Shown here: positions 3,301 through 64,000 of the stretch, in pieces | How the letters are laid out: every line of letters begins with the position of its first letter | Position numbering within the stretch: the first letter of the stretch is position 1 | NCBI GenBank assembly: GCA_964057225.1 | Contig: OZ059894.1 | Coordinates: 5,022,001-5,086,000, forward strand | Reading direction: 5' to 3' | DNA from: Auanema rhodensis | Lineage: Eukaryota; Animalia; Nematoda | DNA length: 64,000 bases | Translations under genes and position numbers: made by a program | Notes under the pieces: model-generated | Databases searched by the model: none | What the model saw: only the letters and a program-made list of their open reading frames with translations | What the model was told of the DNA's origin: nothing

Positions 3301-6300
3301 AAAAATGCACCGAGATATCAACTGATATAAGTTCACACTTATATCCTCCATTTTCACCCTGAAGAATTAATTTTTTCGTTGAATAACATTGTCCATCGTC
3401 TTTGCCTTGAAAAAAGGAATCTAAAAACATCTACTTTTTGCTAAATTATTTTGAAATTTTTCGAAAAAATTTTTGTCAAAATGTTTTTGGAAGCTATGTT
3501 GAGTGTACATGGAAACTCAACATACACTTATGCATCATTTTTCAAACGATCATAACTAATTTTTGTATTAAGCGTTCCTCAATGTAGTATAGTGCATTCG
3601 ATGCGGATTTTTAAGCTGCGTCGATCTGTGTTATCAGATTTGCGCTAGCTTAAAAATGCACCGAGATATCAACTGATATAAGTTCACACTTATATCCTTG
3701 ATTTTCACCCTGGAGAATTAATTTTTTCGTTGAATAACATTGTCCATCGTCTTTGCCTTGAAAAAAGGAATCTAAAAACATCTACTTTTTGCTAAATTAT
3801 TTTGAAATTTTTCGAAAAAATTTTTGTCAAAATGTTTTTGGAAGCTATGTTGAGTGTACATGGAAACTCAACATACACTTATGCATCATTTTTCAAACGA
3901 TCATAACTAATTTTTGTATTAAGCGTTTCTCAAAGTAGTATAGTGCATTCGATGCGGATTTTCAAGTTGCGTCGATCTGTGTTATCAGATTTGCGCTAGC
4001 TTAAAAATGCACCGAGATATCAACTGATATAAGTTCACACTTATATCCTCGATTTTCACCCTGAAGAATTAATTTTTTCGTTGAATAACATTGTCCATCG
4101 TCTTCGCCTTGAAAAAAGGAATCTAATAACATCTACTTTTTGCTAAATTATTTTGAAATTTTTCGAAAAAATTTTTGTCAAAATGTTTTTGGAAGCTATG
4201 TTGAGTGTACATGGAAACTCAACATACACTAATGCATCATTTTTCAAACGATCATAACTAATTTTTGTATTAAGCGTTTCTCAAAGTAGTATAGTGCATT
4301 CGATGCGGATTTCCAAGCTGCGTCGATCTGTGTTATCAGATTTGCGCTAGCTTAAAAATGCACCGAGATATCAACTGATATAAGTTCACACTTATATCCT
4401 CCATTTTCTCCCTGAAGAATTAATTTTTTCGTTGAATAACATTGTCCATCGTCTTTGCCTTGAAAAAAGGAATCTAAAAACATCTACTTTTTGCTAAATT
4501 ATTTTGAAATTTTTCGAAAAAATTTTTGTCAAAATGTTTTTGGAAGCTATGTTGAGTGTACATGGAAACTCAACATACACTAATGCATCATTTTTCAAAC
4601 GATCATAACTAATTTTTGTATTAAGCGTTCCTCAATGTAGTATAGTGCATTCGATGCGGATTTTTAAGCTGCGTCGATCTGTGTTATCAGATTTGCGCTA
4701 GCTTAAAAATGCACCGAGATATCAACTGATATAAGTTCACACTTATATCCTTGATTTTCACCCTGGAGAATTAATTTTTTCGTTGAATAACATTGTCCAT
4801 CGTCTTTGCCTTGAAAAAAGGAATCTAAAAACATCTACTTTTTGCTAAATTATTTTGAAATTTTTCGAAAAAATTTTTGTCAAAATGTTTTTGGAAGCTA
4901 TGTTGAGTGTACATGGAAACTCAACATACACTTATGCATCATTTTTCAAACGATCATAACTAATTTTTGTATTAAGCGTTTCTCAAAGTAGTATAGTGCA
5001 TTCGATGCGGATTTTCAAGTTGCGTCGATCTGTGTTATCAGATTTGCGCTAGCTTAAAAATGCACCGAGATATCAACTGATATAAGTTCACACTTATATC
5101 CTCGATTTTCACCCTGAAGAATTAATTTTTTCGTTGAATAACATTGTCCATCGTCTTCGCCTTGAAAAAAGGAATCTAATAACATCTACTTTTTGCTAAA
5201 TTATTTTGAAATTTTTCGAAAAAATTTTTGTCAAAATGTTTTTGGAAGCTATGTTGAGTGTACATGGAAACTCAACATACACTAATGCATCATTTTTCAA
5301 ACGATCATAACTAATTTTTGTATTAAGCGTTTCTCAAAGTAGTATAGTGCATTCGATGCGGATTTCCAAGCTGCGTCGATCTGTGTTATCAGATTTGCGC
5401 TAGCTTAAAAATGCACCGAGATATCAACTGATATAAGTTCACACTTATATCCTCCATTTTCTCCCTGAAGAATTAATTTTTTCGTTGAATAACATTGTCC
5501 ATCGTCTTTGCCTTGAAAAAAGGAATCTAAAAACATCTACTTTTTGCTAAATTATTTTGAAATTTTTCGAAAAAATTTTTGTCAAAATGTTTTTGGAAGC
5601 TATGTTGAGTGTACATGGAAACTCAACATACACTAATGCATCATTTTTCAAACGATCATAACTAATTTTTGTATTAAGCGTTCCTCAATGTAGTATAGTG
5701 CATTCGATGCGGATTTTTAAGCTGCGTCGATCTGTGTTATCAGATTTGCGCTAGCTTAAAAATGCACCGAGATATCAACTGATATAAGTTCACACTTATA
5801 TCCTTGATTTTCACCCTGAAGAATTAATTTTTTCGTTGAATAACATTGTCCATCGTCTTTGCCTTGAAAAAAGGAATCTAAAAACATCTACTTTTTGCTA
5901 AATTATTTTGAAATTTTTCGAAAAAATTTTTGTCAAAATGTTTTTGGAAGCTATGTTGAGTGTACATGGAAACTCAACATACACTAATGCATCATTTTTC
6001 AAACGATCATAACTAATTTTTGTATTAAGCGTTTCTCAAAGTAGTATAGTGCATTCGATGCGGATTTCCAAGCTGCGTCGATCTGTGTTATCAGATTTGC
6101 GCTAGCTTAAAAATGCACCGAGATATCAACTGATATAAGTTCACACTTATATCCTCCATTTTCACCCTGAAGAATTAATTTTTTCGTTGAATAACATTGT
6201 CCATCGTCTTTGCCTTGAAAAAAGGAATCTAAAAACTTCTACTTTTGCTAAATTATTTTGAAATTTTTCGAAAAAATTTTTGTCAAAATGTTTTTGGAAG

Positions 6301-8072
6301 CTATGTTGAGTGTACATGGAAACTCAACATACACTTATGCATCATTTTTCAAACGATCATAACTAATTTTTGTATTAAGCGTTCCTCAATGTAGTATAGT
6401 GCATTCGATGCGGATTTTTAAGCTGCGTCGATCTGTGTTATCAGATTTGCGCTAGCTTAAAAATGCACCGAGATATCAACTGATATAAGTTCACACTTAT
6501 ATCCTTGATTTTCACCCTGGAGAATTAATTTTTTCGTTGAATAACATTGTCCATCGTCTTTGCCTTGAAAAAAGGAATCTAAAAACATCTACTTTTTGCT
6601 AAATTATTTTGAAATTTTTCGAAAAAATTTTTGTCAAAATGTTTTTGGAAGCTATGTTGAGTGTACATGGAAACTCAACATACACTTATGCATCATTTTT
6701 CAAACGATCATAACTAATTTTTGTATTAAGCGTTTCTCAAAGTAGTATAGTGCATTCGATGCGGATTTTCAAGTTGCGTCGATCTGTGTTATCAGATTTG
6801 CGCTAGCTTAAAAATGCACCGAGATATCAACTGATATAAGTTCACACTTATATCCTCGATTTTCACCCTGAAGAATTAATTTTTTCGTTGAATAACATTG
6901 TCCATCGTCTTTGCCTTGAAAAAAGGAATCTAAAAACATCTACTTTTTGCTAAATTATTTTGAAATTTTTCGAAAAAATTTTTGTCAAAATGTTTTTGGA
7001 AGCTATGTTGAGTGTACATGGAAACTCAACATACACTAATGCATCATTTTTCAAACGATCATAACTAATTTTTGTATTAAGCGTTTCTCAAAGTAGTATA
7101 GTGCATTCGATGCGGATTTCCAAGCTGCGTCGATCTGTGTTATCAGATTTGCGCTAGCTTAAAAATGCACCGAGATATCAACTGATATAAGTTCACACTT
7201 ATATCTTCGATTTTCACCCTGAAGAATTGATTTTTTCGTTGAATAACATTGTCCATCGTCTTTGCCTTGAAAAAAGGAATCTAAAAACATCTACTTTTTG
7301 CTAAATTATTTTGAAATTTTTCGAAAAAATTTTTGTCAAAATGTTTTTGGAAGCTATGTTGAGTGTACATGGAAACTCAACATACACTAATGCATCATTT
7401 TTCAAACGATCATAACTAATTTTTGTATTAAGCGTTTCTCAAAGTAGTATAGTGCATTCGATGCGGATTTCCAAGCTGCGTCGATCTGTGTTATCAGATT
7501 TGCGCTAGCTTAAAAATGCACCGAGATATCAACTGATATAAGTTCACACTTATATCCTCCATTTTCACCCTGAAGAATTAATTTTTTCGTTGAATAACAT
7601 TGTCCATCGTCTTTGCCTTGAAAAAAGGAATCTAAAAACATCTACTTTTTGCTAAATTATTTTGAAATTTTTCGAAAAAATTTTTGTCAAAATGTTTTTG
7701 GAAGCTATGTTGAGTGTACATGGAAACTCAACATACACTTATGCATCATTTTTCAAACGATCATAACTAATTTTTGTATTAAGCGTTTCTCAAAGTAGTA
7801 TAGTGCATTCGATGCGGATTTTCAAGTTGCGTCGATCTGTGTTATCAGATTTGCGCTAGCTTAAAAATGCACCGAGATATCAACTGATATAAGTTCACAC
7901 TTATATCCTCGATTTTCACCCTGAAGAATTAATTTTTTCGTTGAATAACATTGTCCATCGTCTTTGCCTTGAAAAAAGGAATCTAAAAACATCTACTTTT
8001 TGCTAAATTATTTTGAAATTTTTCGAAAAAATTTTTGTCAAAATGTTTTTGGAAGCTATGTTGAGTGTACAT

Positions 8073-8409
8073 GGAAACTCAACATACACTAATGCATCAT
8101 TTTTCAAACGATCATAACTAATTTTTGTATTAAGCGTTTCTCAAAGTAGTATAGTGCATTCGATGCGGATTTCCAAGCTGCGTCGATCTGTGTTATCAGA
8201 TTTGCGCTAGCTTAAAAATGCACCGAGATATCAACTGATATAAGTTCACACTTATATCCTCCATTTTCACCCTGAAGAATTAATTTTTTCGTTGAATAAC
8301 ATTGTCCATCGTCTTTGCCTTGAAAAAAGGAATCTAAAAACATCTACTTTTTGCCAAATTATTTTGAAATTTTTCGAAAAAATTTTTGGAAGCTATGTTG
8401 AGTGTACAT
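8073..8409 (+). repeat. 337-bp deletion-variant monomer (copy 1 of 3; others have junctions at 13287 and 22048)
   Basis: AATTTTTG|GAAGC replaces AATTTTTGTCAAAATGTTTTTGGAAGC. Linked to the GCTAAA>GCCAAA SNP. Confidence 0.95.
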
Positions 8410-11400: not shown

Positions 11401-14400
11401 TCCTTGATTTTCACCCTGGAGAATTAATTTTTTCGTTGAATAACATTGTCCATCGTCTTTGCCTTGAAAAAAGGAATCTAAAAACATCTACTTTTTGCTA
11501 AATTATTTTGAAATTTTTCGAAAAAATTTTTGTCAAAATGTTTTTGGAAGCTATGTTGAGTGTACATGGAAACTCAACATACACTTATGCATCATTTTTC
11601 AAACGATCATAACTAATTTTTGTATTAAGCGTTTCTCAAAGTAGTATAGTGCATTCGATGCGGATTTTCAAGTTGCGTCGATCTGTGTTATCAGATTTGC
11701 GCTAGCTTAAAAATGCACCGAGATATCAACTGATATAAGTTCACACTTATATCCTCGATTTTCACCCTGAAGAATTAATTTTTTCGTTGAATAACATTGT
11801 CCATCGTCTTTGCCTTGAAAAAAGAAATCTAAAAACATCTACTTTTTGCTAAATTATTTTGAAATTTTTCGAAAAAATTTTTGTCAAAATGTTTTTGGAA
11901 GCTATGTTGAGTGTACATGGAAACTCAACATACACTAATGCATCATTTTTCAAACGATCATAACTAATTTTTGTATTAAGCGTTTCTCAAAGTAGTATAG
12001 TGCATTCGATGCGGATTTCCAAGCTGCGTCGATCTGTGTTATCAGATTTGCGCTAGCTTAAAAATGCACCGAGATATCAACTGATATAAGTTCACACTTA
12101 TATCTTCGATTTTCACCCTGAAGAATTGATTTTTTCGTTGAATAACATTGTCCATCGTCTTTGCCTTGAAAAAAGGAATCTAAAAACATCTACTTTTTGC
12201 TAAATTATTTTGAAATTTTTCGAAAAAATTTTTGTCAAAATGTTTTTGGAAGCTATGTTGAGTGTACATGGAAACTCAACATACACTAATGCATCATTTT
12301 TCAAACGATCATAACTAATTTTTGTATTAAGCGTTTCTCAAAGTAGTATAGTGCATTCGATGCGGATTTCCAAGCTGCGTCGATCTGTGTTATCAGATTT
12401 GCGCTAGCTTAAAAATGCACCGAGATATCAACTGATATAAGTTCACACTTATATCCTCCATTTTCACCCTGAAGAATTAATTTTTTCGTTGAATAACATT
12501 GTCCATCGTCTTTGCCTTGAAAAAAGGAATCTAAAAACATCTACTTTTTGCTAAATTATTTTGAAATTTTTCGAAAAAATTTTTGTCAAAATGTTTTTGG
12601 AAGCTATGTTGAGTGTACATGGAAACTCAACATACACTTATGCATCATTTTTCAAACGATCATAACTAATTTTTGTATTAAGCGTTTCTCAAAGTAGTAT
12701 AGTGCATTCGATGCGGATTTTCAAGTTGCGTCGATCTGTGTTATCAGATTTGCGCTAGCTTAAAAATGCACCGAGATATCAACTGATATAAGTTCACACT
12801 TATATCCTCGATTTTCACCCTGAAGAATTAATTTTTTCGTTGAATAACATTGTCCATCGTCTTTGCCTTGAAAAAAGGAATCTAAAAACATCTACTTTTT
12901 GCTAAATTATTTTGAAATTTTTCGAAAAAATTTTTGTCAAAATGTTTTTGGAAGCTATGTTGAGTGTACATGGAAACTCAACATACACTAATGCATCATT
13001 TTTCAAACGATCATAACTAATTTTTGTATTAAGCGTTTCTCAAAGTAGTATAGTGCATTCGATGCGGATTTCCAAGCTGCGTCGATCTGTGTTATCAGAT
13101 TTGCGCTAGCTTAAAAATGCACCGAGATATCAACTGATATAAGTTCACACTTATATCCTCCATTTTCACCCTGAAGAATTAATTTTTTCGTTGAATAACA
13201 TTGTCCATCGTCTTTGCCTTGAAAAAAGGAATCTAAAAACATCTACTTTTTGCCAAATTATTTTGAAATTTTTCGAAAAAATTTTTGGAAGCTATGTTGA
13301 GTGTACATGGAAACTCAACATACACTAATGCATCATTTTTCAAACGATCATAACTAATTTTTGTATTAAGCGTTCCTCAATGTAGTATAGTGCATTCGAT
13401 GCGGATTTTTAAGCTGCGTCGATCTGTGTTATCAGATTTGCGCTAGCTTAAAAATGCACCGAGATATCAACTGATATAAGTTCACACTTATATCCTTGAT
13501 TTTCACCCTGAAGAATTAATTTTTTCGTTGAATAACATTGTCCATCGTCTTTGCCTTGAAAAAAGGAATCTAAAAACATCTACTTTTTGCTAAATTATTT
13601 TGAAATTTTTCGAAAAAATTTTTGTCAAAATGTTTTTGGAAGCTATGTTGAGTGTACATGGAAACTCAACATACACTTATGCATCATTTTTCAAACGATC
13701 ATAACTAATTTTTGTATTAAGCGTTTCTCAAAGTAGTATAGTGCATTCGATGCGGATTTTCAAGTTGCGTCGATCTGTGTTATCAGATTTGCGCTAGCTT
13801 AAAAATGCACCGAGATATCAACTGATATAAGTTCACACTTATATCCTCGATTTTCACCCTGAAGAATTAATTTTTTCGTTGAATAACATTGTCCATCGTC
13901 TTTGCCTTGAAAAAAGGAATCTAAAAACATCTACTTTTTGCTAAATTATTTTGAAATTTTTCGAAAAAATTTTTGTCAAAATGTTTTTGGAAGCTATGTT
14001 GAGTGTACATGGAAACTCAACATACACTTATGCATCATTTTTCAAACGATCATAACTAATTTTTGTATTAAGCGTTCCTCAATGTAGTATAGTGCATTCG
14101 ATGCGGATTTTTAAGCTGCGTCGATCTGTGTTATCAGATTTGCGCTAGCTTAAAAATGCACCGAGATATCAACTGATATAAGTTCACACTTATATCCTCG
14201 ATTTTCACCCTGAAGAATTAATTTTTTCGTTGAATAACATTGTCCATCGTCTTTGCCTTGAAAAAAGGAATCTAAAAACATCTACTTTTTGCTAAATTGT
14301 TTTGAAATTTTTCGAAAAAATTTTTGTCAAAATGTTTTTGGAAGCTATGTTGAGTGTACATGGAAACTCAACATACACTAATGCATCATTTTTCAAACGA

Positions 14401-17400
14401 TCATAACTAATTTTTGTATTAAGCGTTTCTCAAAGTAGTATAGTGCATTCGATGCGGATTTCCAAGCTGCGTCGATCTGTGTTATCAGATTTGCGCTAGC
14501 TTAAAAATGCACCGAGATATCAACTGATATAAGTTCACACTTATATCCTCCATTTTCACCCTGAAGAATTAATTTTTTCGTTGAATAACATTGTCCATCG
14601 TCTTTGCCTTGAAAAAAGGAATCTAAAAACATCTACTTTTTGCTAAATTATTTTGAAATTTTTCGAAAAAATTTTTGTCAAAATGTTTTTGGAAGCTATG
14701 TTGAGTGTACATGGAAACTCAACATACACTAATGCATCATTTTTCAAACGATCATAACTAATTTTTGTATTAAGCGTTTCTCAAAGTAGTATAGTGCATT
14801 CGATGCGGATTTCCAAGCTGCGTCGATCTGTGTTATCAGATTTGCGCTAGCTTAAAAATGCACCGAGATATCAACTGATATAAGTTCACACTTATATCCT
14901 CCATTTTCACCCTGAAGAATTAATTTTTTCGTTGAATAACATTGTCCATCGTCTTTGCCTTGAAAAAAGGAATCTAAAAACATCTACTTTTTGCTAAATT
15001 ATTTTGAAATTTTTCGAAAAAATTTTTGTCAAAATGTTTTTGGAAGCTATGTTGAGTGTACATGGAAACTCAACATACACTTATGCATCATTTTTCAAAC
15101 GATCATAACTAATTTTTGTATTAAGCGTTCCTCAATGTAGTATAGTGCATTCGATGCGGATTTTTAAGCTGCGTCGATCTGTGTTATCAGATTTGCGCTA
15201 GCTTAAAAATGCACCGAGATATCAACTGATATAAGTTCACACTTATATCCTTGATTTTCACCCTGGAGAATTAATTTTTTCGTTGAATAACATTGTCCAT
15301 CGTCTTTGCCTTGAAAAAAGGAATCTAAAAACATCTACTTTTTGCTAAATTATTTTGAAATTTTTCGAAAAAATTTTTGTCAAAATGTTTTTGGAAGCTA
15401 TGTTGAGTGTACATGGAAACTCAACATACACTTATGCATCATTTTTCAAACGATCATAACTAATTTTTGTATTAAGCGTTTCTCAAAGTAGTATAGTGCA
15501 TTCGATGCGGATTTTCAAGTTGCGTCGATCTGTGTTATCAGATTTGCGCTAGCTTAAAAATGCACCGAGATATCAACTGATATAAGTTCACACTTATATC
15601 CTCGATTTTCACCCTGAAGAATTAATTTTTTCGTTGAATAACATTGTCCATCGTCTTCGCCTTGAAAAAAGGAATCTAATAACATCTACTTTTTGCTAAA
15701 TTATTTTGAAATTTTTCGAAAAAATTTTTGTCAAAATGTTTTTGGAAGCTATGTTGAGTGTACATGGAAACTCAACATACACTAATGCATCATTTTTCAA
15801 ACGATCATAACTAATTTTTGTATTAAGCGTTTCTCAAAGTAGTATAGTGCATTCGATGCGGATTTCCAAGCTGCGTCGATCTGTGTTATCAGATTTGCGC
15901 TAGCTTAAAAATGCACCGAGATATCAACTGATATAAGTTCACACTTATATCCTCCATTTTCTCCCTGAAGAATTAATTTTTTCGTTGAATAACATTGTCC
16001 ATCGTCTTTGCCTTGAAAAAAGGAATCTAAAAACATCTACTTTTTGCTAAATTGTTTTGAAATTTTTCGAAAAAATTTTTGTCAAAATGTTTTTGGAAGC
16101 TATGTTGAGTGTACATGGAAACTCAACATACACTAATGCATCATTTTTCAAACGATCATAACTAATTTTTGTATTAAGCGTTCCTCAATGTAGTATAGTG
16201 CATTCGATGCGGATTTTTAAGCTGCGTCGATCTGTGTTATCAGATTTGCGCTAGCTTAAAAATGCACCGAGATATCAACTGATATAAGTTCACACTTATA
16301 TCCTTGATTTTCACCCTGAAGAATTAATTTTTTCGTTGAATAACATTGTCCATCGTCTTTGCCTTGAAAAAAGGAATCTAAAAACATCTACTTTTTGCTA
16401 AATTATTTTGAAATTTTTCGAAAAAATTTTTGTCAAAATGTTTTTGGAAGCTATGTTGAGTGTACATGGAAACTCAACATACACTTATGCATCATTTTTC
16501 AAACGATCATAACTAATTTTTGTATTAAGCGTTTCTCAAAGTAGTATAGTGCATTCGATGCGGATTTTCAAGTTGCGTCGATCTGTGTTATCAGATTTGC
16601 GCTAGCTTAAAAATGCACCGAGATATCAACTGATATAAGTTCACACTTATATCCTCGATTTTCACCCTGAAGAATTAATTTTTTCGTTGAATAACATTGT
16701 CCATCGTCTTTGCCTTGAAAAAAGGAATCTAAAAACATCTACTTTTTGCTAAATTATTTTGAAATTTTTCGAAAAAATTTTTGTCAAAATGTTTTTGGAA
16801 GCTATGTTGAGTGTACATGGAAACTCAACATACACTAATGCATCATTTTTCAAACGATCATAACTAATTTTTGTATTAAGCGTTCCTCAATGTAGTATAG
16901 TGCATTCGATGCGGATTTTTAAGCTGCGTCGATCTGTGTTATCAGATTTGCGCTAGCTTAAAAATGCACCGAGATATCAACTGATATAAGTTCACACTTA
17001 TATCTTTGATTTTCACCCTGTAGAATTAATTTTTTCGTTGAATAACATTGTCCATCGTCTTTGCCTTGAAAAAAGGAATCTAAAAACATCTACTTTTTGC
17101 TAAATTATTTTGAAATTTTTCGAAAAAATTTTTGTCAAAATGTTTTTGGAAGCTATGTTGAGTGTACATGGAAACTCAACATACACTTATGCATCATTTT
17201 TCAAACGATCATAACTAATTTTTGTATTAAGCGTTCCTCAATGTAGTATAGTGCATTCGATGCGGATTTTTAAGCTGCGTCGATCTGTGTTATCAGATTT
17301 GCGCTAGCTGAAAAATGCACCGAGATATCAACTGATATAAGTTCACACTTATATCCTCGATTTTCACCCTGAAGAATTAATTTTTTCGTTGAATAACATT

Positions 17401-50300: not shown

Positions 50301-52099
50301 CGAGATATCAACTGATATAAGTTCACACTTATATCCTCCATTTTCACCCTGAAGAATTAATTTTTTCGTTGAATAACATTGTCCATCGTCTTTGCCTTGA
50401 AAAAAGGAATCTAAAAACATCTACTTTTTGCTAAATTATTTTGAAATTTTTCGAAAAAATTTTTGTCAAAATGTTTTTGGAAGCTATGTTGAGTGTACAT
50501 GGAAACTCAACATACACTAATGCATCATTTTTCAAACGATCATAACTAATTTTTGTATTAAGCGTTTCTCAAAGTAGTATAGTGCATTCGATGCGGATTT
50601 CCAAGCTGCGTCGATCTGTGTTATCAGATTTGCGCTAGCTTAAAAATGCACCGAGATATCAACTGATATAAGTTCACACTTATATCCTCCATTTTCACCC
50701 TGAAGAATTAATTTTTTCGTTGAATAACATTGTCCATCGTCTTTGCCTTGAAAAAAGGAATCTAAAAACATCTACTTTTTGCTAAATTATTTTGAAATTT
50801 TTCGAAAAAATTTTTGTCAAAATGTTTTTGGAAGCTATGTTGAGTGTACATGGAAACTCAACATACACTAATGCATCATTTTTCAAACGATCATAACTAA
50901 TTTTTGTATTAAGCGTTTCTCAAAGTAGTATAAAGCATTCGATGCGGATTTCCAAGCTGCGTCGATCTGTGTTATCAGATTTGCGCTAGCTTAAAAATGC
51001 ACCGAGATATCAACTGATATAAGTTCACACTTATATCCTCCATTTTCACCCTGAAGAATTAATTTTTTCGTTGAATAACATTGTCCATCGTCTTTGCCTT
51101 GAAAAAAGGAATCTAAAAACATTTACTTTTTGCTAAATTATTTTGAAATTTTTCGAAAAAATTTTTGTCAAAATGTTTTTGGAAGCTATGTTGAGTGTAC
51201 ATGGAAACTCAACATACACTTATGCATCATTTTTCAAACGATCATAACTAATTTTTGTATTAAGCGTTCCTCAATGTAGTATAGTGCATTCGATGCGGAT
51301 TTTTAAGCTGCGTCGATCTGTGTTATCAGATTTGCGCTAGCTTAAAAATGCACCGAGATATCAACTGATATAAGTTCACACTTATATCCTTGATTTTCAC
51401 CCTGGAGAATTAATTTTTTCGTTGAATAACATTGTCCATCGTCTTTGCCTTGAAAAAAGGAATCTAAAAACATCTACTTTTTGCTAAATTATTTTGAAAT
51501 TTTTCGAAAAAATTTTTGTCAAAATGTTTTTGGAAGCTATGTTGAGTGTACATGGAAACTCAACATACACTTATGCATCATTTTTCAAACGATCATAACT
51601 AATTTTTGTATTAAGCGTTCCTCAATGTAGTATAGTGCATTCGATGCGGATTTTTAAGCTGCGTCGATCTGTGTTATCAGATTTGCGCTAGCTTAAAAAT
51701 GCACCGAGATATCAACTGATATAAGTTCACACTTATATCCTTGATTTTCACCCTGGAGAATTAATTTTTTCGTTGAATAACATTGTCCATCGTCTTTGCC
51801 TTGAAAAAAGGAATCTAAAAACATCTACTTTTTGCTAAATTATTTTGAAATTTTTCGAAAAAATTTTTGTCAAAATGTTTTTGGAAGCAATGTTGAGTGT
51901 ACATGGAAACTCAACATACACTAATGCATCATTTTTCAAACGATCAAAACTAATTTTTGTATTAAGCGTTTCTCAAAGTAGTATAGTGCATTCGATGCGG
52001 ATTTTCAAGCTGCGTCGATCTGTGTTATCAGATTTGCGCTAGCTTAAAAATGCACCGAGATATCAACTGATATAAGTTCACACTTATATCCTCGATTTT

Positions 52100-55000
52100 C
52101 ACCCTGAAGAATTAATTTTTTCGTTGAATAACATTGTCCATCGTCTTTGCCTTGAAAAAAGGAATCTAAAAACATCTACTTTTTGCTAAATTATTTTGAA
52201 ATTTTTCGAAAAAATTTTTGTCAAAATGTTTTTGGAAGCTATGTTGAGTGTACATGGAAACTCAACATACACTAATGCATCATTTTTCAAACGATCATAA
52301 CTAATTTTTGTATTAAGCGTTTCTCAAAGTAGTATAGTGCATTCGATGCGGATTTTCAAGTTGCGTCGATCTGTGTTATCAGATTTGCGCTAGCTTAAAA
52401 ATGCACCGAGATATCAACTGATATAAGTTCACACTTATATCCTCGATTTTCACCCTGAAGAATTAATTTTTTCGTTGAATAACATTGTCCATCGTCTTTG
52501 CCTTGAAAAAAGGAATCTAAAAACATCTACTTTTTGCTAAATTATTTTGAAATTTTTCGAAAAAATTTTTGTCAAAATGTTTTTGGAAGCTATGTTGAGT
52601 GTACATGGAAACTCAACATACACTAATGCATCATTTTTCAAACGATCATAACTAATTTTTGTATTAAGCGTTTCTCAAAGTAGTATAGTGCATTCGATGC
52701 GGATTTCCAAGCTGCGTCGATCTGTGTTATCAGATTTGCGCTAGCTTAAAAATGCACCGAGATATCAACTGATATAAGTTCACACTTATATCCTCCATTT
52801 TCACCCTGAAGAATTAATTTTTTCGTTGAATAACATTGTCCATCGTCTTTGCCTTGAAAGAAGGAATCTAAAAACATCTACTTTTTGCTAAATTATTTTG
52901 AAATTTTTCGAAAAAATTTTTGTCAAAATGTTTTTGGAAGCTATGTTGAGTGTACATGGAAACTCAACATACACTTATGCATCATTTTTCAAACGATCAT
53001 AACTAATTTTTGTATTAAGCGTTCCTCAATGTAGTATAGTGCATTCGATGCGGATTTTTAAGCTGCGTCGATCTGTGTTATCAGATTTGCGCTAGCTTAA
53101 AAATGCACCGAGATATCAACTGATATAAGTTCACACTTATATCCTCGATTTTCACCCTGAAGAATTAATTTTTTCGTTGAATAACATTGTCCATCGTCTT
53201 TGCCTTGAAAAAAGGAATCTAAAAACATCTACTTTTTGCTAAATTATTTTGAAATTTTTCGAAAAAATTTTTGTCAAAATGTTTTTGGAAGCTATGTTGA
53301 GTGTACATGGAAACTCAACATACACTTATGCATCATTTTTCAAACGATCATAACTAATTTTTGTATTAAGCGTTCCTCAATGTAGTATAGTGCATTCAAT
53401 GCGGATTTTTGAGCTGCGTCGATCTGTGTTATCAGATTTGCGCTAGCTTAAAAATGCACCGAGATATCAACTGATATAAGTTCACACTTATATCCTTGAT
53501 TTTCACCCTGGAGAATTAATTTTTTCGTTGAATAACATTGTCCATCGTCTTTGCCTTGAAAAAAGGAATCTAAAAACATCTACTTTTTGCTAAATTATTT
53601 TGAAATTTTTCGAAAAAATTTTTGTCAAAATGTTTTTGGAAGCAATGTTGAGTGTACATGGAAACTCAACATACACTAATGCATTATTTTTCAAACGATC
53701 ATAACTAATTTTTGTATTAAGCGTTTCTCAAAGTAGTATAGTGCATTCGATGCGGATTTTTAAGCTGCGTCGATCTGTGTTATCAGATTTGCGCTAGCTT
53801 AAAAATGCACCGAGATATCAACTGATATAAGTTCACACTTATATCCTCGATTTTCACCCTGAAGAATTAATTTTTTCGTTGAATAACATTGTCCATCGTC
53901 TTTGCCTTGAAAAAAGGAATCTAAAAACATCTACTTTTTGCTAAATTATTTTGAAATTTTTCGAAAAAATTTTTGTCAAAATGTTTTTGGAAGCTATGTT
54001 GAGTGTACATGGAAACTCAACATACACTAATGCATCATTTTTCAAACGATCATAACTAATTTTTGTATTAAGCGTTTCTCAAAGTAGTATAGTGCATTCG
54101 ATGCGGATTTTCAAGTTGCGTCGATCTGTGTTATCAGATTTGCGCTAGCTTAAAAATGCACCGAGATATCAACTGATATAAGTTCACACTTATATCCTCG
54201 ATTTTCACCCTGAAGAATTAATTTTTTCGTTGAATAACATTGTCCATCGTCTTTGCCTTGAAAAAAGAAATCTAAAAACATCTACTTTTTGCTAAATTAT
54301 TTTGAAATTTTTCGAAAAAATTTTTGTCAAAATGTTTTTGGAAGCTATGTTGAGTGTACATGGAAACTCAACATACACTAATGCATTATTTTTCAAACGA
54401 TCATAACTAATTTTTGTATTAAGCGTTCCTCAATGTAGTATAGTGCATTCGATGCGGATTTTTAAGCTGCGTCGATCTGTGTTATCAGATTTGCGCTAGC
54501 TTAAAAATGCACCGAGATATCAACTGATATAAGTTCACACTTATATCCTTGATTTTCACCCTGGAGAATTAATTTTTTCGTTGAATAACATTGTCGATCG
54601 TCTTTGTCTTGAAAAAAGGAATCTAAAAACATCTACTTTTTGCTAAATTATTTTGAAATTTTTCGAAAAAATTTTTGTCAAAATGTTTTTGGAAGCAATG
54701 TTGAGTGTACATGGAAACTCAACATACACTAATGCATCATTTTTCAAACGATCATAACTAATTTTTGTATTAAGCGTTCCTCAATGTAGTATAGTGCATT
54801 CGATGCGGATTTTCAAGCTGTGTCGATCTGTGTTATCAGATTTGCGCTAGCTTAAAAATGCACCGAGATATCAACTGATATAAGTTCACACTTATATCCT
54901 CGATTTTCACCCTGAAGAATTAATTTTTTCGTTGAATAACATTGTCCATCGTCTTTGCCTTGAAAAAAGGAATCTAAAAACATCTACTTTTTGCTAAATT

Positions 55001-57720
55001 ATTTTGAAATTTTTCGAAAAAATTTTTGTCAAAATGTTTTTGGAAGCTATGTTGAGTGTACATGGAAACTCAACATACACTAATGCATCATTTTTCAAAC
55101 GATCATAACTAATTTTTGTATTAAGCGTTTCTCAAAGTAGTATAGTGCATTCGATGCGGATTTTCAAGTTGCGTCGATCTGTGTTATCAGATTTGCGCTA
55201 GCTTAAAAATGCACCGAGATATCAACTGATATAAGTTCACACTTATATCCTCGATTTTCACCCTGAAGAATTAATTTTTTCGTTGAATAACATTGTCCAT
55301 CGTCTTTGCCTTGAAAAAAGGAATCTAAAAACATCTACTTTTTGCTAAATTATTTTGAAATTTTTCGAAAAAATTTTTGTCAAAATGTTTTTGGAAGCTA
55401 TGTTGAGTGTACATGGAAACTCAACATACACTAATGCATCATTTTTCAAACGATCATAACTAATTTTTGTATTAAGCGTTTCTCAAAGTAGTATAGTGCA
55501 TTCGATGCGGATTTCCAAGCTGCGTCGATCTGTGTTATCAGATTTGCGCTAGCTTAAAAATGCACCGAGATATCAACTGATATAAGTTCACACTTATATC
55601 CTCCATTTTCACCCTGAAGAATTAATTTTTTCGTTGAATAACATTGTCCATCGTCTTTGCCTTGAAAGAAGGAATCTAAAAACATCTACTTTTTGCTAAA
55701 TTATTTTGAAATTTTTCGAAAAAATTTTTGTCAAAATGTTTTTGGAAGCTATGTTGAGTGTACATGGAAACTCAACATACACTTATGCATCATTTTTCAA
55801 ACGATCATAACTAATTTTTGTATTAAGCGTTCCTCAATGTAGTATAGTGCATTCGATGCGGATTTTTAAGCTGCGTCGATCTGTGTTATCAGATTTGCGC
55901 TAGCTTAAAAATGCACCGAGATATCAACTGATATAAGTTCACACTTATATCCTCGATTTTCACCCTGAAGAATTAATTTTTTCGTTGAATAACATTGTCC
56001 ATCGTCTTTGCCTTGAAAAAAGGAATCTAAAAACATCTACTTTTTGCTAAATTATTTTGAAATTTTTCGAAAAAATTTTTGTCAAAATGTTTTTGGAAGC
56101 TATGTTGAGTGTACATGGAAACTCAACATACACTTATGCATCATTTTTCAAACGATCATAACTAATTTTTGTATTAAGCGTTCCTCAATGTAGTATAGTG
56201 CATTCAATGCGGATTTTTGAGCTGCGTCGATCTGTGTTATCAGATTTGCGCTAGCTTAAAAATGCACCGAGATATCAACTGATATAAGTTCACACTTATA
56301 TCCTTGATTTTCACCCTGGAGAATTAATTTTTTCGTTGAATAACATTGTCCATCGTCTTTGCCTTGAAAAAAGGAATCTAAAAACATCTACTTTTTGCTA
56401 AATTATTTTGAAATTTTTCGAAAAAATTTTTGTCAAAATGTTTTTGGAAGCAATGTTGAGTGTACATGGAAACTCAACATACACTAATGCATTATTTTTC
56501 AAACGATCATAACTAATTTTTGTATTAAGCGTTTCTCAAAGTAGTATAGTGCATTCGATGCGGATTTTTAAGCTGCGTCGATCTGTGTTATCAGATTTGC
56601 GCTAGCTTAAAAATGCACCGAGATATCAACTGATATAAGTTCACACTTATATCCTCGATTTTCACCCTGAAGAATTAATTTTTTCGTTGAATAACATTGT
56701 CCATCGTCTTTGCCTTGAAAAAAGGAATCTAAAAACATCTACTTTTTGCTAAATTATTTTGAAATTTTTCGAAAAAATTTTTGTCAAAATGTTTTTGGAA
56801 GCTATGTTGAGTGTACATGGAAACTCAACATACACTAATGCATCATTTTTCAAACGATCATAACTAATTTTTGTATTAAGCGTTTCTCAAAGTAGTATAG
56901 TGCATTCGATGCGGATTTTCAAGTTGCGTCGATCTGTGTTATCAGATTTGCGCTAGCTTAAAAATGCACCGAGATATCAACTGATATAAGTTCACACTTA
57001 TATCCTCGATTTTCACCCTGAAGAATTAATTTTTTCGTTGAATAACATTGTCCATCGTCTTTGCCTTGAAAAAAGAAATCTAAAAACATCTACTTTTTGC
57101 TAAATTATTTTGAAATTTTTCGAAAAAATTTTTGTCAAAATGTTTTTGGAAGCTATGTTGAGTGTACATGGAAACTCAACATACACTAATGCATTATTTT
57201 TCAAACGATCATAACTAATTTTTGTATTAAGCGTTCCTCAATGTAGTATAGTGCATTCGATGCGGATTTTTAAGCTGCGTCGATCTGTGTTATCAGATTT
57301 GCGCTAGCTTAAAAATGCACCGAGATATCAACTGATATAAGTTCACACTTATATCCTTGATTTTCACCCTGGAGAATTAATTTTTTCGTTGAATAACATT
57401 GTCGATCGTCTTTGTCTTGAAAAAAGGAATCTAAAAACATCTACTTTTTGCTAAATTATTTTGAAATTTTTCGAAAAAATTTTTGTCAAAATGTTTTTGG
57501 AAGCAATGTTGAGTGTACATGGAAACTCAACATACACTAATGCATCATTTTTCAAACGATCATAACTAATTTTTGTATTAAGCGTTCCTCAATGTAGTAT
57601 AGTGCATTCGATGCGGATTTTCAAGCTGTGTCGATCTGTGTTATCAGATTTGCGCTAGCTTAAAAATGCACCGAGATATCAACTGATATAAGTTCACACT
57701 TATATCCTCGATTTTCACCC
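52100..57720 (+). repeat. Tandem higher-order repeat: 2 x 8 monomers (2808-bp unit); boundaries approximate
   Basis: Markers repeat at +2808: GAAAGAAGG 52860/55668, CATTCAAT 53398/56206, TTTGAGC 53411/56219, GTCGATCG 54596/57404, GCTGTGTC 54821/57629. Confidence 0.92.
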
Positions 57721-59479
57721 TGAAGAATTGATTTTTTCGTTGAATAACATTGTCCATCGTCTTTGCCTTGAAAAAAGGAATCTAAAAACATCTACTTTTT
57801 GCTAAATTATTCTGAAATTTTTCGAAAAAATTTTTGTCAAAATGTTTTTGGAAGCAATGTTGAGTGTACATGGAAACTCAACATACACTAATGCATCATT
57901 TTTCAAACGATCATAACTAATTTTTGTATCAAGCGTTTCTCAAAGTAGTATAGTGCATTCGATGCGGATTTTCAAGCTGCGTCGATCTGTGTTATCAGAT
58001 TTGCGCTAGCTTAAAAATGCACCGAGATATCAACTGATATAAGTTCACACTTATATCCTCGATTTTCACCCTGAAGAATTAATTTTTTCGTTGAATAACA
58101 TTGTCCATCGTCTTTGCCTTAAAAAAAGGAATCTAAAAACATCTACTTTCTGCTAAATTATTTCGAAATTTTTCGAAAAAAGTTTTGTCAAAATGTTTTT
58201 GGAAGCAATGTTGAGTGTACATGGAAACTCAACATACACTAATGCATCATTTTTCAAACGATCATAACTAATTTTTGTATTAAGCGTTTCTCAAAGTAGT
58301 ATAGTGCATTCGATGCGGATTTTCAAGCTGCGTCGATCTGTGTTATCAGATTTGCGCTAGCTTAAAAATGCACCGAGATATCAACTGATATAAGTTCACA
58401 CTTATATCCTCCATTTTCACCCTGAAGAATTAATTTTTTCGTTGAATAACATTGTCCATCGTCTTTGCCTTGAAAAAAGGAATCTAAAAACATCTACTTT
58501 TTGCTAAATTATTTTGAAATTTTTCGAAAAAATTTTTGTCAAAATGTTTTTGGAAGCTATGTTGAGTGTACATGGAAACTCAACATACACTAATGCATCA
58601 TTTTTCAAACGATCATAACTAATTTTTGTATTAAGCGTTTCTCAAAGTAGTATAAAGCATTCGATGCGGATTTCCAAGCTGCGTCGATCTGTGTTATCAG
58701 ATTTGCGCTAGCTTAAAAATGCACCGAGATATCAACTGATATAAGTTCACACTTATATCCTCCATTTTCACCCTGAAGAATTAATTTTTTCGTTGAATAA
58801 CATTGTCCATCGTCTTTGCCTTGAAAAAAGGAATCTAAAAACATTTACTTTTTGCTAAATTATTTTGAAATTTTTCGAAAAAATTTTTGTCAAAATGTTT
58901 TTGGAAGCTATGTTGAGTGTACATGGAAACTCAACATACACTTATGCATCATTTTTCAAACGATCATAACTAATTTTTGTATTAAGCGTTCCTCAATGTA
59001 GTATAGTGCATTCGATGCGGATTTTTAAGCTGCGTCGATCTGTGTTATCAGATTTGCGCTAGCTTAAAAATGCACCGAGATATCAACTGATATAAGTTCA
59101 CACTTATATCCTTGATTTTCACCCTGGAGAATTAATTTTTTCGTTGAATAACATTGTCCATCGTCTTTGCCTTGAAAAAAGGAATCTAAAAACATCTACT
59201 TTTTGCTAAATTATTTTGAAATTTTTCGAAAAAATTTTTGTCAAAATGTTTTTGGAAGCTATGTTGAGTGTACATGGAAACTCAACATACACTTATGCAT
59301 CATTTTTCAAACGATCATAACTAATTTTTGTATTAAGCGTTCCTCAATGTAGTATAGTGCATTCGATGCGGATTTTTAAGCTGCGTCGATCTGTGTTATC
59401 AGATTTGCGCTAGCTTAAAAATGCACCGAGATATCAACTGATATAAGTTCACACTTATATCCTTGATTTTCACCCTGGA

Positions 59480-61600
59480 GAATTAATTTTTTCGTTGAAT
59501 AACATTGTCCATCGTCTTTGCCTTGAAAAAAGGAATCTAAAAACATCTACTTTTTGCTAAATTATTTTGAAATTTTTCGAAAAAATTTTTGTCAAAATGT
59601 TTTTGGAAGCAATGTTGAGTGTACATGGAAACTCAACATACACTAATGCATCATTTTTCAAACGATCAAAACTAATTTTTGTATTAAGCGTTTCTCAAAG
59701 AAGTATAGTGCATTCGATGCGGATTTTCAAGCTGCGTCGATCTGTGTTATCAGATTTGCGCTAGCTTAAAAATGCACCGAGATATCAACTGATATAAGTT
59801 CACACTTATATCCTCGATTTTCACCCTGAAGAATTAATTTTTTCGTTGAATAACATTGTCCATCGTCTTTGCCTTGAAAAAAGGAATCTAAAAACATCTA
59901 CTTTTTGCTAAATTATTTTGAAATTTTTCGAAAAAATTTTTGTCAAAATGTTTTTGGAAGCTATGTTGAGTGTACATGGAAACTCAACATACACTAATGC
60001 ATCATTTTTCAAACGATCATAACTAATTTTTGTATTAAGCGTTTCTCAAAGTAGTATAGTGCATTCGATGCGGATTTTCAAGTTGCGTCGATCTGTGTTA
60101 TCAGATTTGCGCTAGCTTAAAAATGCACCGAGATATCAACTGATATAAGTTCACACTTATATCCTCGATTTTCACCCTGAAGAATTAATTTTTTCGTTGA
60201 ATAACATTGTCCATCGTCTTTGCCTTGAAAAAAGGAATCTAAAAACATCTACTTTTTGCTAAATTATTTTGAAATTTTTCGAAAAAATTTTTGTCAAAAT
60301 GTTTTTGGAAGCTATGTTGAGTGTACATGGAAACTCAACATACACTAATGCATCATTTTTCAAACGATCATAACTAATTTTTGTATTAAGCGTTTCTCAA
60401 AGTAGTATAGTGCATTCGATGCGGATTTCCAAGCTGCGTCGATCTGTGTTATCAGATTTGCGCTAGCTTAAAAATGCACCGAGATATCAACTGATATAAG
60501 TTCACACTTATATCCTCCATTTTCACCCTGAAGAATTAATTTTTTCGTTGAATAACATTGTCCATCGTCTTTGCCTTGAAAAAAGGAATCTAAAAACATC
60601 TACTTTTTGCTAAATTATTTTGAAATTTTTCGAAAAAATTTTTGTCAAAATGTTTTTGGAAGCAATGTTGAGTGTACATGGAAACTCAACATACACTAAT
60701 GCATCATTTTTCAAACGATCAAAACTAATTTTTGTATTAAGCGTTTCTCAAAGAAGTATAGTGCATTCGATGCGGATTTTCAAGCTGCGTCGATCTGTGT
60801 TATCAGATTTGCGCTAGCTTAAAAATGCACCGAGATATCAACTGATATAAGTTCACACTTATATCCTCGATTTTCACCCTGAAGAATTAATTTTTTCGTT
60901 GAATAACATTGTCCATCGTCTTTGCCTTGAAAAAAGGAATCTAAAAACATCTACTTTTTGCTAAATTATTTTGAAATTTTTCGAAAAAATTTTTGTCAAA
61001 ATGTTTTTGGAAGCTATGTTGAGTGTACATGGAAACTCAACATACACTAATGCATCATTTTTCAAACGATCATAACTAATTTTTGTATTAAGCGTTTCTC
61101 AAAGTAGTATAGTGCATTCGATGCGGATTTTCAAGTTGCGTCGATCTGTGTTATCAGATTTGCGCTAGCTTAAAAATGCACCGAGATATCAACTGATATA
61201 AGTTCACACTTATATCCTCGATTTTCACCCTGAAGAATTAATTTTTTCGTTGAATAACATTGTCCATCGTCTTTGCCTTGAAAAAAGGAATCTAAAAACA
61301 TCTACTTTTTGCTAAATTATTTTGAAATTTTTCGAAAAAATTTTTGTCAAAATGTTTTTGGAAGCTATGTTGAGTGTACATGGAAACTCAACATACACTA
61401 ATGCATCATTTTTCAAACGATCATAACTAATTTTTGTATTAAGCGTTTCTCAAAGTAGTATAGTGCATTCGATGCGGATTTCCAAGCTGCGTCGATCTGT
61501 GTTATCAGATTTGCGCTAGCTTAAAAATGCACCGAGATATCAACTGATATAAGTTCACACTTATATCCTCCATTTTCACCCTGAAGAATTAATTTTTTCG
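59480..61600 (+). repeat. Tandem higher-order repeat: 2 x 3 monomers (1053-bp unit); boundaries approximate
   Basis: The GCAATG / GATCAAAAC / CAAAGAAG monomer occurs at 59567 and 60620 (ORF track, +1053), each followed by the same two monomer types. Confidence 0.9.
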
Positions 61601-63869
61601 TTGAATAACATTGTCCATCGTCTTTGCCTTGAAAGAAGGAATCTAAAAACATCTACTTTTTGCTAAATTATTTTGAAATTTTTCGAAAAAATTTTTGTCA
61701 AAATGTTTTTGGAAGCTATGTTGAGTGTACATGGAAACTCAACATACACTAATGCATCATTTTTCAAACGATCATAACTAATTTTTGTATTAAGCGTTTC
61801 TCAAAGTAGTATAGTGCATTCGATGCGGATTTCCAAGCTGCGTCGATCTGTGTTATCAGATTTGCGCTAGCTTAAAAATGCACCGAGATATCAACTGATA
61901 TAAGTTCACACTTATATCCTCCATTTTCACCCTGAAGAATTAATTTTTTCGTTGAATAACATTGTCCATCGTCTTTGCCTTGAAAGAAGGAATCTAAAAA
62001 CATCTACTTTTTGCTAAATTATTTTGAAATTTTTCGAAAAAATTTTTGTCAAAATGTTTTTGGAAGCTATGTTGAGTGTACATGGAAACTCAACATACAC
62101 TAATGCATCATTTTTCAAACGATCATAACTAATTTTTGTATTAAGCGTTTCTCAAAGTAGTATAAAGCATTCGATGCGGATTTCCAAGCTGCGTCGATCT
62201 GTGTTATCAGATTTGCGCTAGCTTAAAAATGCACCGAGATATCAACTGATATAAGTTTAATACAAAAATTAGTTATGATCGTTTGAAAAATGATGCATTA
62301 GTGTATGTTGAGTTTCCATGTACACTCAACATAGCTTCCAAAAACATTTTGACAAAAATTTTTTCGAAAAATTTCAAAATAATTTAGCAAAAAGTAGATG
62401 TTTTTAGATTCCTTCTTTCAAGGCAAAGACGATGGACAATGTTATTCAACGAAAAAATTAATTCTTCAGGGTGAAAATGGAGGATATAAGTGTGAACTTA
62501 TATCAGTTGATATCTCGGTGCATTTTTAAGCTAGCGCAAATCTGATAACACAGATCGACGCAGCTTGGAAATCCGCATCGAATGCACTATACTACTTTGA
62601 GAAACGCTTAATACAAAAATTAGTTATGATCGTTTGAAAAATGATGCATTAGTGTATGTTGAGTTTCCATGTACACTCAACATAGCTTCCAAAAACATTT
62701 TGACAAAAATTTTTTCGAAAAATTTCAAAATAATTTAGCAAAAAGTAGATGTTTTTAGATTCCTTCTTTCAAGGCAAAGACGATGGACAATGTTATTCAA
62801 CGAAAAAATTAATTCTTCAGGGTGAAAATGGAGGATATAAGTGTGAACTTATATCAGTTGATATCTCGGTGCATTTTTAAGCTAGCGCAAATCTGATAAC
62901 ACAGATCGACGCAGCTTGGAAATCCGCATCGAATGCACTATACTACTTTGAGAAACGCTTAATACAAAAATTAGTTATGATCGTTTGAAAAATGATGCAT
63001 TAGTGTATGTTGAGTTTCCATGTACACTCAACATAGCTTCCAAAAACATTTTGACAAAAATTTTTTCGAAAAATTTCAAAATAATTTAGCAAAAAGTAGA
63101 TGTTTTTAGATTCCTTTTTTCAAGGCAAAGACGATGGACAATGTTATTTAACGAAAAAATTAATTCTTCAGGGTGAAAATCGAGGATATAAGTGTGAACT
63201 TATATCAGTTGATATCTCGGTGCATTTTTAAGCTAGCGCAAATCTGATAACACAGATCGACGCAACTTGAAAATCCGCATCGAATGCACTATACTACTTT
63301 GAGAAACGCTTAATACAAAAATTAGTTATGATCGTTTGAAAAATGATGCATTAGTGTATGTTGAGTTTCCATGTACACTCAACATAGCTTCCAAAAACAT
63401 TTTGACAAAAATTTTTTCGAAAAATTTCAAAATAATTTAGCAAAAAGTAGATGTTTTTAGATTCCTTTTTTCAAGGCAAAGACGATGGACAATGTTATTC
63501 AACGAAAAAATTAATTCTTCAGGGTGAAAATCGAGGATATAAGTGTGAACTTATATCAGTTGATATCTCTGTGCATTTTTAAGCTAGCGCAAATCTGATA
63601 ACACAGATCGACGCAGCTTGAAAATCCGCATCGAATGCACTATACTTCTTTGAGAAACGCTTAATACAAAAATTAGTTTTGATCGTTTGAAAAATGATGC
63701 ATTAGTGTATGTTGAGTTTCCATGTACACTCAACATTGCTTCCAAAAACATTTTGACAAAAATTTTTTCGAAAAATTTCAAAATAATTTAGCAAAAAGTA
63801 GATGTTTTTAGATTCCTTTTTTCAAGGCAAAGACGATGGACAATGTTATTCAACGAAAAAATTAATTCT
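60532..63869. repeat. Fold-back inverted duplication (palindrome): arms 60532-62144 and 62257-63869, 112-bp spacer 62145-62256
   Basis: Rare variants mirror at coordinate sum 124401: G61986/C62415, G61635/C62766, and ORF-track entries 60620..60817(+) and 63584..63781(-). Two mismatches seen, at 63149 and 63570. Confidence 0.95.
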
Positions 63870-64000
63870 CCAGGGTGAAAATCAAGGATATAAGTGTGAA
63901 CTTATATCAGTTGATATCTCGGTGCATTTTTAAGCTAGCGCAAATCTGATAACACAGATCGACGCAGCTTAAAAATCCGCATCGAATGCACTATACTACA
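62257..64000 (-). repeat. Same 351-bp satellite in inverted orientation (~5 monomers, runs off window edge)
   Basis: From 62257 the sequence reads TTAATACAAAAATTAGTTATGATCG..., the reverse complement of monomer position 61 backwards, and keeps the 351-bp period (next copy at 62608). Confidence 0.99.

Follow-up and report, generated by a model that had tools for sequence, protein, structure and literature searches.

The 64,000-nt stretch of Auanema rhodensis DNA analyzed here (contig OZ059894.1, positions 5,022,001 to 5,086,000; hereafter, the window) consists of a single 351-bp satellite that changes orientation close to its right end, and the monomers that follow the switch are a near-perfect mirror image of those that immediately precede it, with a spacer of 112 nt between the two arms. 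We consider that this structure is probably, with a likelihood of about 0.6, a real and inherited inverted duplication within the satellite array, generated through one break and one U-turn. The type of rearrangement is already known, the U-turn being the mark ordinarily left when a broken DNA end copies back on itself.

Organization of the Satellite Array

The window contains 177 monomers in the plus orientation, followed by about five in the minus orientation from position 62257 onward. Tandem Repeats Finder delimited the same two blocks, both with a 351-bp period (plus, 1-62257, 177.5 copies; minus, 62257-63999, 5 copies), and the sign flip of both the GC skew and the AT skew falls in the last bin of the window. 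The plus array is highly regular: 173 monomers are 351 nt long, three share an identical 14-nt deletion (at 8383, 13282 and 22043) and one measures 350 nt. It also includes exact block duplications of 2908 nt (starting at 52014 and 54822) and 2191 nt (2310 and 13863). A search of positions 60000-64000 for Rfam families and tRNAs gave no match, the monomer strings that were searched for in the literature were found in no paper, and the articles consulted on DNA elimination in nematodes and on Mesorhabditis made no mention of a 351-bp unit. The elements that define the switch are the following:

1-62256, plus strand: 351-bp satellite array, with 178 anchor sites
60532-62144, plus strand: left palindrome arm; outward from the axis, its monomers are of types A, A, B, C
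62145-62256, plus strand: spacer of 112 nt, an in-phase continuation of the left-arm monomer; template strand
62257-63869, minus strand: right arm, reverse-complementary to 60532-62144; its monomers are of types A, A, B*, C*

The Block beyond the Switch Mirrors the Adjacent Monomers

The core of the right arm (62258-63869) differs from the reverse complement of 60532-62143 at only two positions out of 1612 nt, 63149 and 63570. When the comparison was extended to the whole interval 62258-64000 at a coordinate sum of 124401, eight mismatches were counted in 1743 nt, versus about 1200 when the sum was shifted by one to three units. The adjacent register was also the best of the 160 possible in-phase registers, the next one presenting 9 mismatches and the median being 29. 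Using the direct array as a null, two or fewer mismatches were found in only 19 of 12,126 non-overlapping pairs of 1612-nt segments (0.16%). The individual variants follow the same order: GAAAGAAGG, found at 61982 and 61631, has exact mirror copies at 62411 and 62762; TTCAAGTT at 61130 has its own at 63264; GATCAAAAC at 60717 is mirrored at 63676; and CAAAGAAG at 60749 is mirrored at 63645. A preliminary description of this DNA had proposed that the switch is a fold-back of the neighboring monomers, with arms of about 1.6 kb in register around the sum of 124401 and diagnostic alleles in mirrored order, and each of these points was borne out by the above figures. The same description suggested that the switch may be the axis of a much larger inverted duplication, of which the window would contain only 1.74 kb of the right arm.

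Spacer, Junction and Monomer Hairpin

The length of 112 nt that had been given for the spacer proved correct, with the addition of T62257, a single ambiguous nucleotide common to both sides of the junction. The sequence is identical to that of the preceding monomer up to 62164, and the spacer carries a rare TATAAAGCA allele, present three times in the window. The whole structure requires just one new adjacency, 62257|62258, which contains no inserted bases and displays an overlap of 1 nt (T62257/A62144). An inverted microhomology of at least 2 bp was absent from the junction between the spacer and the inverted copy, position 62256 being unable to pair with 62145. The 1-nt homology is no more than expected by chance. 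The 23-mer spanning the junction occurs once in the window, and no open reading frame crosses it.

Each monomer contains three perfect inverted repeats, and the break coincides with the stem/loop boundary of one of them:

61897-61918, plus strand: intact native hairpin in the neighboring monomer (9-bp stem, 4-nt loop, -5.6 kcal/mol, z = -5.85)
62248-62257, plus strand: truncated native hairpin, GATATAAGT plus T, broken where the 5' stem meets the loop

This hairpin is present in 176 plus and 5 minus monomers. Positions inside any of the three loops represent about 6% of the total, and those inside the loop of the broken hairpin only 1.4%. The center of symmetry (62200/62201) is located about 50 nt away from the hairpin, that is, the center of the palindrome is not the short inverted repeat. 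A folding of the spacer on itself that would prime its own extension was also considered and rejected: the homology is limited to 1 nt and the 3' end of the predicted fold is unpaired (z = -1.37). The proposal of a fold-back event is upheld in what concerns the architecture (adjacent mirror, short continuous spacer and single junction).

Differences between the Two Arms

The substitutions T63149 and T63570 are found in the right arm and nowhere else in the window, at sites that are invariant in the other 181 monomers. The density of such singletons in the right arm is within the background of the array (0.51 per kb). That both fall on the right arm would also fit a stretch of lower quality or derived from the other haplotype. 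Beyond 63869, the correspondence between arms is governed by the following features:

63870-64000, minus strand: right-arm tail; 6 mismatches in 131 nt with its mirror partner, exact match to 59348-59478 (type E), 1053 nt further out
59479-60531, plus strand: extra 1053-nt (three-monomer) unit, exclusive to the left arm; 59479-60581 and 60532-61634 have the same sequence
60389-60739, plus strand: hybrid monomer D, unique in the window; first 143 nt of type A, last part of type E

It had been claimed that the mirror continues in a shifted register, and indeed, a shift of 1053 nt lowers the mismatches in the tail from 6 to 0 over 131 nt; the register is shifted because the left arm contains the extra 1053-bp unit, which carries the hybrid monomer. 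The 131-nt tail alone is also perfectly matched in 26 of about 177 left monomers, and the last 339 nt match two places only. The crossover in hybrid monomer D maps inside a 50-nt identical stretch, and this monomer is the scar of an unequal exchange. Counted from the junction, differences between the arms appear at 892, 1313 and 1612 nt; they consist of substitutions and the change of a whole unit, not of homopolymer errors. This lack of identity argues against a chimeric read derived from both strands of one molecule, whose arms should match.

Searches in Sequencing Reads and Metagenomes

The junction query was sampled as 16 words; none of the 19 sequencing runs examined contained the full set, and the best contained 14. 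The non-junction 31-mers of this query occur between 48 and 181 times each in the window, so the missing words are probably those of the junction; nevertheless, their absence is weak evidence, because contig building drops rare branches. For the interval 62058-63657, four runs yielded between 7,000 and 93,000 short collapsed satellite contigs each, with ties assigned to the first monomer that matched. The JGI metagenome contigs, searched for exact copies of the junction 30-mer, gave no match.

Origin of the Switch and Alternative Explanations

The mirroring of adjacent monomers, a short spacer that extends one arm without interruption and the presence of only one new junction together support, as far as sequence organization can tell, a fold-back or U-turn architecture. 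According to the model that we favor, the plus array would have been broken, or a nascent strand would have ended, at T62256/62257, on the margin of the loop in the 9-bp hairpin common to the monomers. The resulting 3' end would then have paired through one nucleotide with A62144, either 112 nt behind it on its own strand or at the equivalent site of the sister chromatid, and synthesis would have copied the array backward to yield the mirrored right arm, leaving the 112-nt loop as an unduplicated spacer. Later, the right arm would have acquired two substitutions, and the left arm its three-monomer unit by unequal exchange. We infer that the break took place in vivo, and likewise the template (same strand versus sister) and the sequence in which the later events followed; with respect to the enzymes, our preferred guess would be the nicking of the loop by a structure-specific nuclease, followed by one-nucleotide priming of the polymerase theta type.

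A less probable, albeit serious, explanation is that the switch originated in the library or in the assembly. In such a case, a fold-back chimeric molecule or read, arising from snap-back in the course of end repair or amplification, or from read-through of the template into its complement, would have led the assembler to walk back along the same array or the other haplotype's copy, and the right arm would not correspond to genomic DNA of its own. Scaffold ends are places prone to such hairpin joins. The 112 nt between the arm ends fall within the class of recurrent nanopore fold-back artefacts, with ends less than 200 bp apart (PMC12240814); the junction words and the collapsed contigs mentioned above did not confirm the junction in any run; one arm holds both substitutions; and a perfect 1053-nt tandem duplication that lacks one of its units resembles the collapse of a repeat or a length difference between alleles. 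Against this, a fold-back read of a single molecule should have identical arms, and the three differences described, which are not of the homopolymer kind, appear within the first 1612 nt. Moreover, the mirrored order is not expected from a random ligation chimera (0.16%), and the break lies in a hairpin loop and not at a random shear point.

Other origins are far more difficult to sustain. The inversion of a part of the array through two breaks, or a chance resemblance to monomers further away, could invoke the near-identical distant blocks of 2908 and 2191 nt described above. However, the adjacent register is the sole best of 160 (2 versus 9 mismatches), equally close matches were restricted to the 19 random pairs, and a second break would have had to hit a copy of the same block exactly. 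The preliminary description had disfavored a simple two-break inversion on the grounds that it would bring in distant monomers, and we concur, as the block mirrors its neighbors and the odds of this by chance are about 0.2%; this origin is thus very improbable. Slightly less credible still is a palindrome seeded by a native short inverted repeat, or a Foldback-type transposon. In the amplification of Tetrahymena rDNA and in that of yeast palindromes, a break beside a short inverted repeat leads to a large palindrome with a non-palindromic center, and the break described here does touch a native 9-bp inverted repeat. Yet, the center of symmetry is some 50 nt from that hairpin, whose second arm has been lost, and pairing begins at 62144/62257, outside the inverted repeat: in Tetrahymena and yeast the short inverted repeat forms the center, while here it would only mark the break, with the pairing site 112 nt away. 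As for transposons, Foldback elements have arms built of tandem repeats, but no element ends were found along the 62 kb of the left array.

Comparison with Known Systems

The inherited U-turn that we favor has a close parallel in the human constitutional fold-back inverted duplications, with spacers of 766-70,466 bp and homologies of 2-8 bp (Hermetz et al. 2014, PMC3907307). In both, the inverted copy mirrors the sequence next to it, the spacer is unduplicated and runs on from one of the arms, and spacer and inverted copy meet at one seamless junction. In contrast with the human cases, the Auanema spacer is only 112 nt long, the homology is reduced to 1 nt, the site lies within a satellite array and neither a terminal deletion nor a healed telomere is visible in the 64-kb window.

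A second parallel is provided by the end joining mediated by polymerase theta (polq-1) in Caenorhabditis elegans, whose footprint combines a homology of a single nucleotide with a size of 50-200 bp (Roerink et al. 2014, PMC4032859). The 1-nt homology, the 112-nt offset, the nematode germline and the link to a replication obstacle, here the hairpin, are reminiscent of that footprint. However, the C. elegans events are direct deletions, some of them with a short templated insert (PMC4032859), whereas the present case involves an inverted copy of kilobase scale without a templated insert. Finally, the arm ends resemble, in their proximity, the fold-back-like inversion artefacts of long reads described with SAVANA, which appear as alignments in opposite orientation with ends less than 200 bp apart (PMC12240814); in these artefacts both arms come from a single molecule, as its two strands, and are identical and equally long, while here they are distinguished by two substitutions and a 1053-nt unit within 1.7 kb.

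Implications

Should the switch be an artefact, it would draw attention to a type of mis-join that could be present in many of the assembly's satellite arrays. If it is real, it would provide a base-resolution example of a satellite array changing its orientation, by means of a break in a hairpin loop, a U-turn and a single-nucleotide homology, followed by datable later events (two substitutions and one unequal exchange), and it would offer a concrete mechanism for the strand switches found in many complete assemblies. A bolder and, in our opinion, unlikely extension would be that fold-back at monomer hairpins constitutes a recurrent and heritable route by which the satellite arrays of this nematode grow and flip, the head-to-head junctions acting as sources of hairpin RNA for the small-RNA silencing of the satellite family or representing scars of the breaks of programmed DNA elimination. 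A real switch would, in addition, supply a marker with which to follow how arrays turn over in a nematode that may eliminate its satellites from somatic cells.

The Satellite Array

The window consists entirely of one 351-bp satellite with a G+C content of about 32%, and both GC and AT skew reverse their sign in its last 2 kb. In the direct-orientation ('+') part, 173 of the 177 monomers have exactly 351 nt, three share an identical 14-nt deletion and one has 350 nt. The relevant features are as follows:

1–62257, + strand: '+' satellite array, 177.5 copies (Tandem Repeats Finder)
62257–63999, − strand: inverted satellite array, 5 copies (Tandem Repeats Finder)
8383, 13282 and 22043: monomers with the 14-nt deletion (TTTTTGTCAAAATG)
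6017–6367: monomer lacking one T
52014–54921 and 54822–57729: exact direct duplicate of 2908 nt, spaced by 2808 nt (8 monomers)
2310–4500 and 13863–16053: exact direct duplicate of 2191 nt, 11,553 nt apart
60532–62144, + strand: left arm of the palindrome
62145–62256: spacer, 112 nt
62257–63869, − strand: right arm

The 2908-nt duplicate represents a higher-order block duplication of very recent date within the array, and the distance between the 2191-nt copies indicates that block copying is long-range as well as local. Rfam and tRNA searches over 60000–64000 gave no match, no reading frame near the junction exceeds 34 codons, and a literature search did not find the 351-bp satellite. Satellite 31-mers were matched exactly in sequencing runs carrying eight different organism labels, with summed word depths of up to millions and variant contigs in the tens of thousands; the satellite family is thus very abundant and common to close relatives or strains.

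Mirrored Order of the Monomers

The preliminary description had proposed that the monomers adjacent to a symmetry axis are repeated in reverse order beyond it, in arms of about 1.6 kb separated by a 112-bp spacer, and the analysis confirms this, the arms and spacer listed here agreeing with those sizes. When 62258–64000 was aligned with 60401–62143 in mirror register (coordinate sum 124401), 8 mismatches were found in 1743 nt, and moving the sum by 1–3 raised them to about 1200. The core (62258–63869 versus 60532–62143) shows only 2 mismatches in 1612 nt, this adjacent register being the unique best of 160 in-phase '+' registers (runner-up 9 mismatches, median 29). Single monomers discriminate poorly, several others differing by just 1 mismatch, and the informative signal is the monomer order. 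Among 12,126 non-overlapping 1612-nt pairs taken from the array itself, 19 (0.16%) had 2 mismatches or fewer, so that the mirror order matches far better than random array segments. The diagnostic alleles, which are rare, are all mirrored exactly: GAAAGAAGG occurs in six '+' monomers, whose sole adjacent pair adjoins the axis, and CAAAGAAG and GATCAAAAC occur in two and three, respectively. Given the unique register and the scarcity of equally close pairs, a two-break inversion, already rejected in the preliminary description, or a chance resemblance is very unlikely.

Divergence of the Arms and Likely Order of Events

Outward from the axis, the monomers of the left arm follow the order A A B C D B C E and those of the right arm the order A A B* C* E, where B* and C* are the right-arm versions of B and C. 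Each of these carries one substitution (T63149 and T63570, respectively), singletons at positions that do not vary among the other 181 monomers, and the right-arm singleton density is within the array background, 0.51 singletons per kb. The left arm contains an exact tandem duplication with a period of 1053 nt, 59479–60581 being identical to 60532–61634 (1103 nt, 0 mismatches), and one monomer unique in the window:

60389–60739: monomer D, an exact hybrid, first 143 nt type A, last part type E

Its crossover falls in a 50-nt identical stretch, and monomer D marks where A and E underwent unequal exchange, an event by which the left arm gained three monomers. This three-monomer unit is absent from the right arm, whose order is E C B A A, so the arms have diverged by the unit and the two substitutions. 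This also explains the shifted register noticed beyond the exact arms: past 63869, the mirror register gives 6 mismatches in 131 nt and the register 1053 nt further out gives none (this tail by itself has a perfect counterpart in 26 left monomers; for the last 339 nt there are only two matching places), because the right arm is without the left arm's 1053-nt unit.

The two monomers adjoining the axis (61442–62143) are identical, within a 529-nt exact run (61285–61813 versus 61636–62164), and the presence of the A-A pair in both arms indicates that its duplication is older than the fold-back. The most economical sequence of events would be the A-A duplication, then the fold-back, followed by the two substitutions in the right arm and the duplication in the left. 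Alternatively, the left-arm duplication may have come first, with the right arm later losing one unit, at the cost of one extra event.

The Junction and Its Possible Origin

The '+' array continues unbroken through 62144 into 62145–62256, and is identical to the preceding monomer as far as 62164; the boundary between left arm and spacer is therefore not a breakpoint but merely the end of the symmetry. The sole new adjacency is 62257|62258, with 0 inserted bases. T62257 is assignable to either side, which sets the homology at 1 nt, and 62256 does not pair with 62145.

An adjacent mirror copy, a spacer that is not duplicated and runs on from one arm, and a single seamless junction bear out the fold-back reading, and the structure is most likely an inverted duplication of the fold-back (U-turn) type. 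It might have arisen by resection followed by intrastrand fold-back priming, by stalling of a fork at which the nascent strand switched to the sister, or by fusion of sister chromatids with unequally trimmed ends; these routes would yield the same sequence and are indistinguishable here. The same three features characterize the human constitutional rearrangements documented by Hermetz et al. (PMC3907307), although the spacers there span 766 bp–70 kb (112 nt here) and the homologies 2–8 bp (1 nt here). The 112 nt and 1-nt homology also recall, by resemblance only, polymerase-theta end joining at replication-associated breaks in C. elegans, characterized by 50–200 bp and single-nucleotide homology (PMC4032859).

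Each monomer contains just three perfect inverted repeats:

e.g., 61717–61746: 10-bp stem, 10-nt loop
e.g., 61897–61918: 9-bp stem, 4-nt loop, kept in 176 of about 177 '+' monomers
e.g., 62027–62045: 8-bp stem, 3-nt loop

The '+' array ends exactly at the 5' stem/loop boundary of the 9-bp hairpin, whose predicted fold as single-stranded DNA is −5.6 kcal/mol (z = −5.85). As about 6% of monomer positions lie within any of the three loops, this location is suggestive, not proof. The proposed involvement of a hairpin loop holds for the break position and fails for self-priming, since the spacer fold shows no special capacity to place its 3' end on 62144 (the minimum-energy fold leaves that end free, z = −1.37). 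Seeding of the palindrome by the native hairpin was excluded, as the symmetry centre (62200/62201) is about 50 nt off the hairpin, whose second arm was lost.

Real Structure or Artefact

We consider the palindrome to be a real structure with a probability of roughly 0.6. An assembly or library artefact appears less likely; the 112-nt gap between arm ends is of a size also seen in nanopore fold-back artefacts that recur (PMC12240814). The divergence of the arms, at distances from the junction of 892, 1313 and 1612 nt and through substitutions and a whole-unit change and not homopolymer errors, argues against a chimeric read from a single molecule, and the mirror order argues against a random ligation chimera; the possible forms that remain are a join to the copy on the other haplotype or a collapsed repeat. 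Explanations of any other kind are highly improbable.

A run search with a junction query returned 19 runs, the best two containing 14 of the 16 sampled words. Only the 29 query 31-mers spanning the junction are unique, the remainder occurring 48–181 times each in the window, so the absent words are probably junction words. However, where an extremely abundant satellite dominates the graph, the contigs built from it are expected to lose a single-copy branch. Per run, 7,000–93,000 short contigs matched the junction region, ties being placed on the first matching monomer, a pattern compatible with either the presence or the absence of the junction and of the private alleles.

The palindrome of this window would be a further example of an already known kind of rearrangement.
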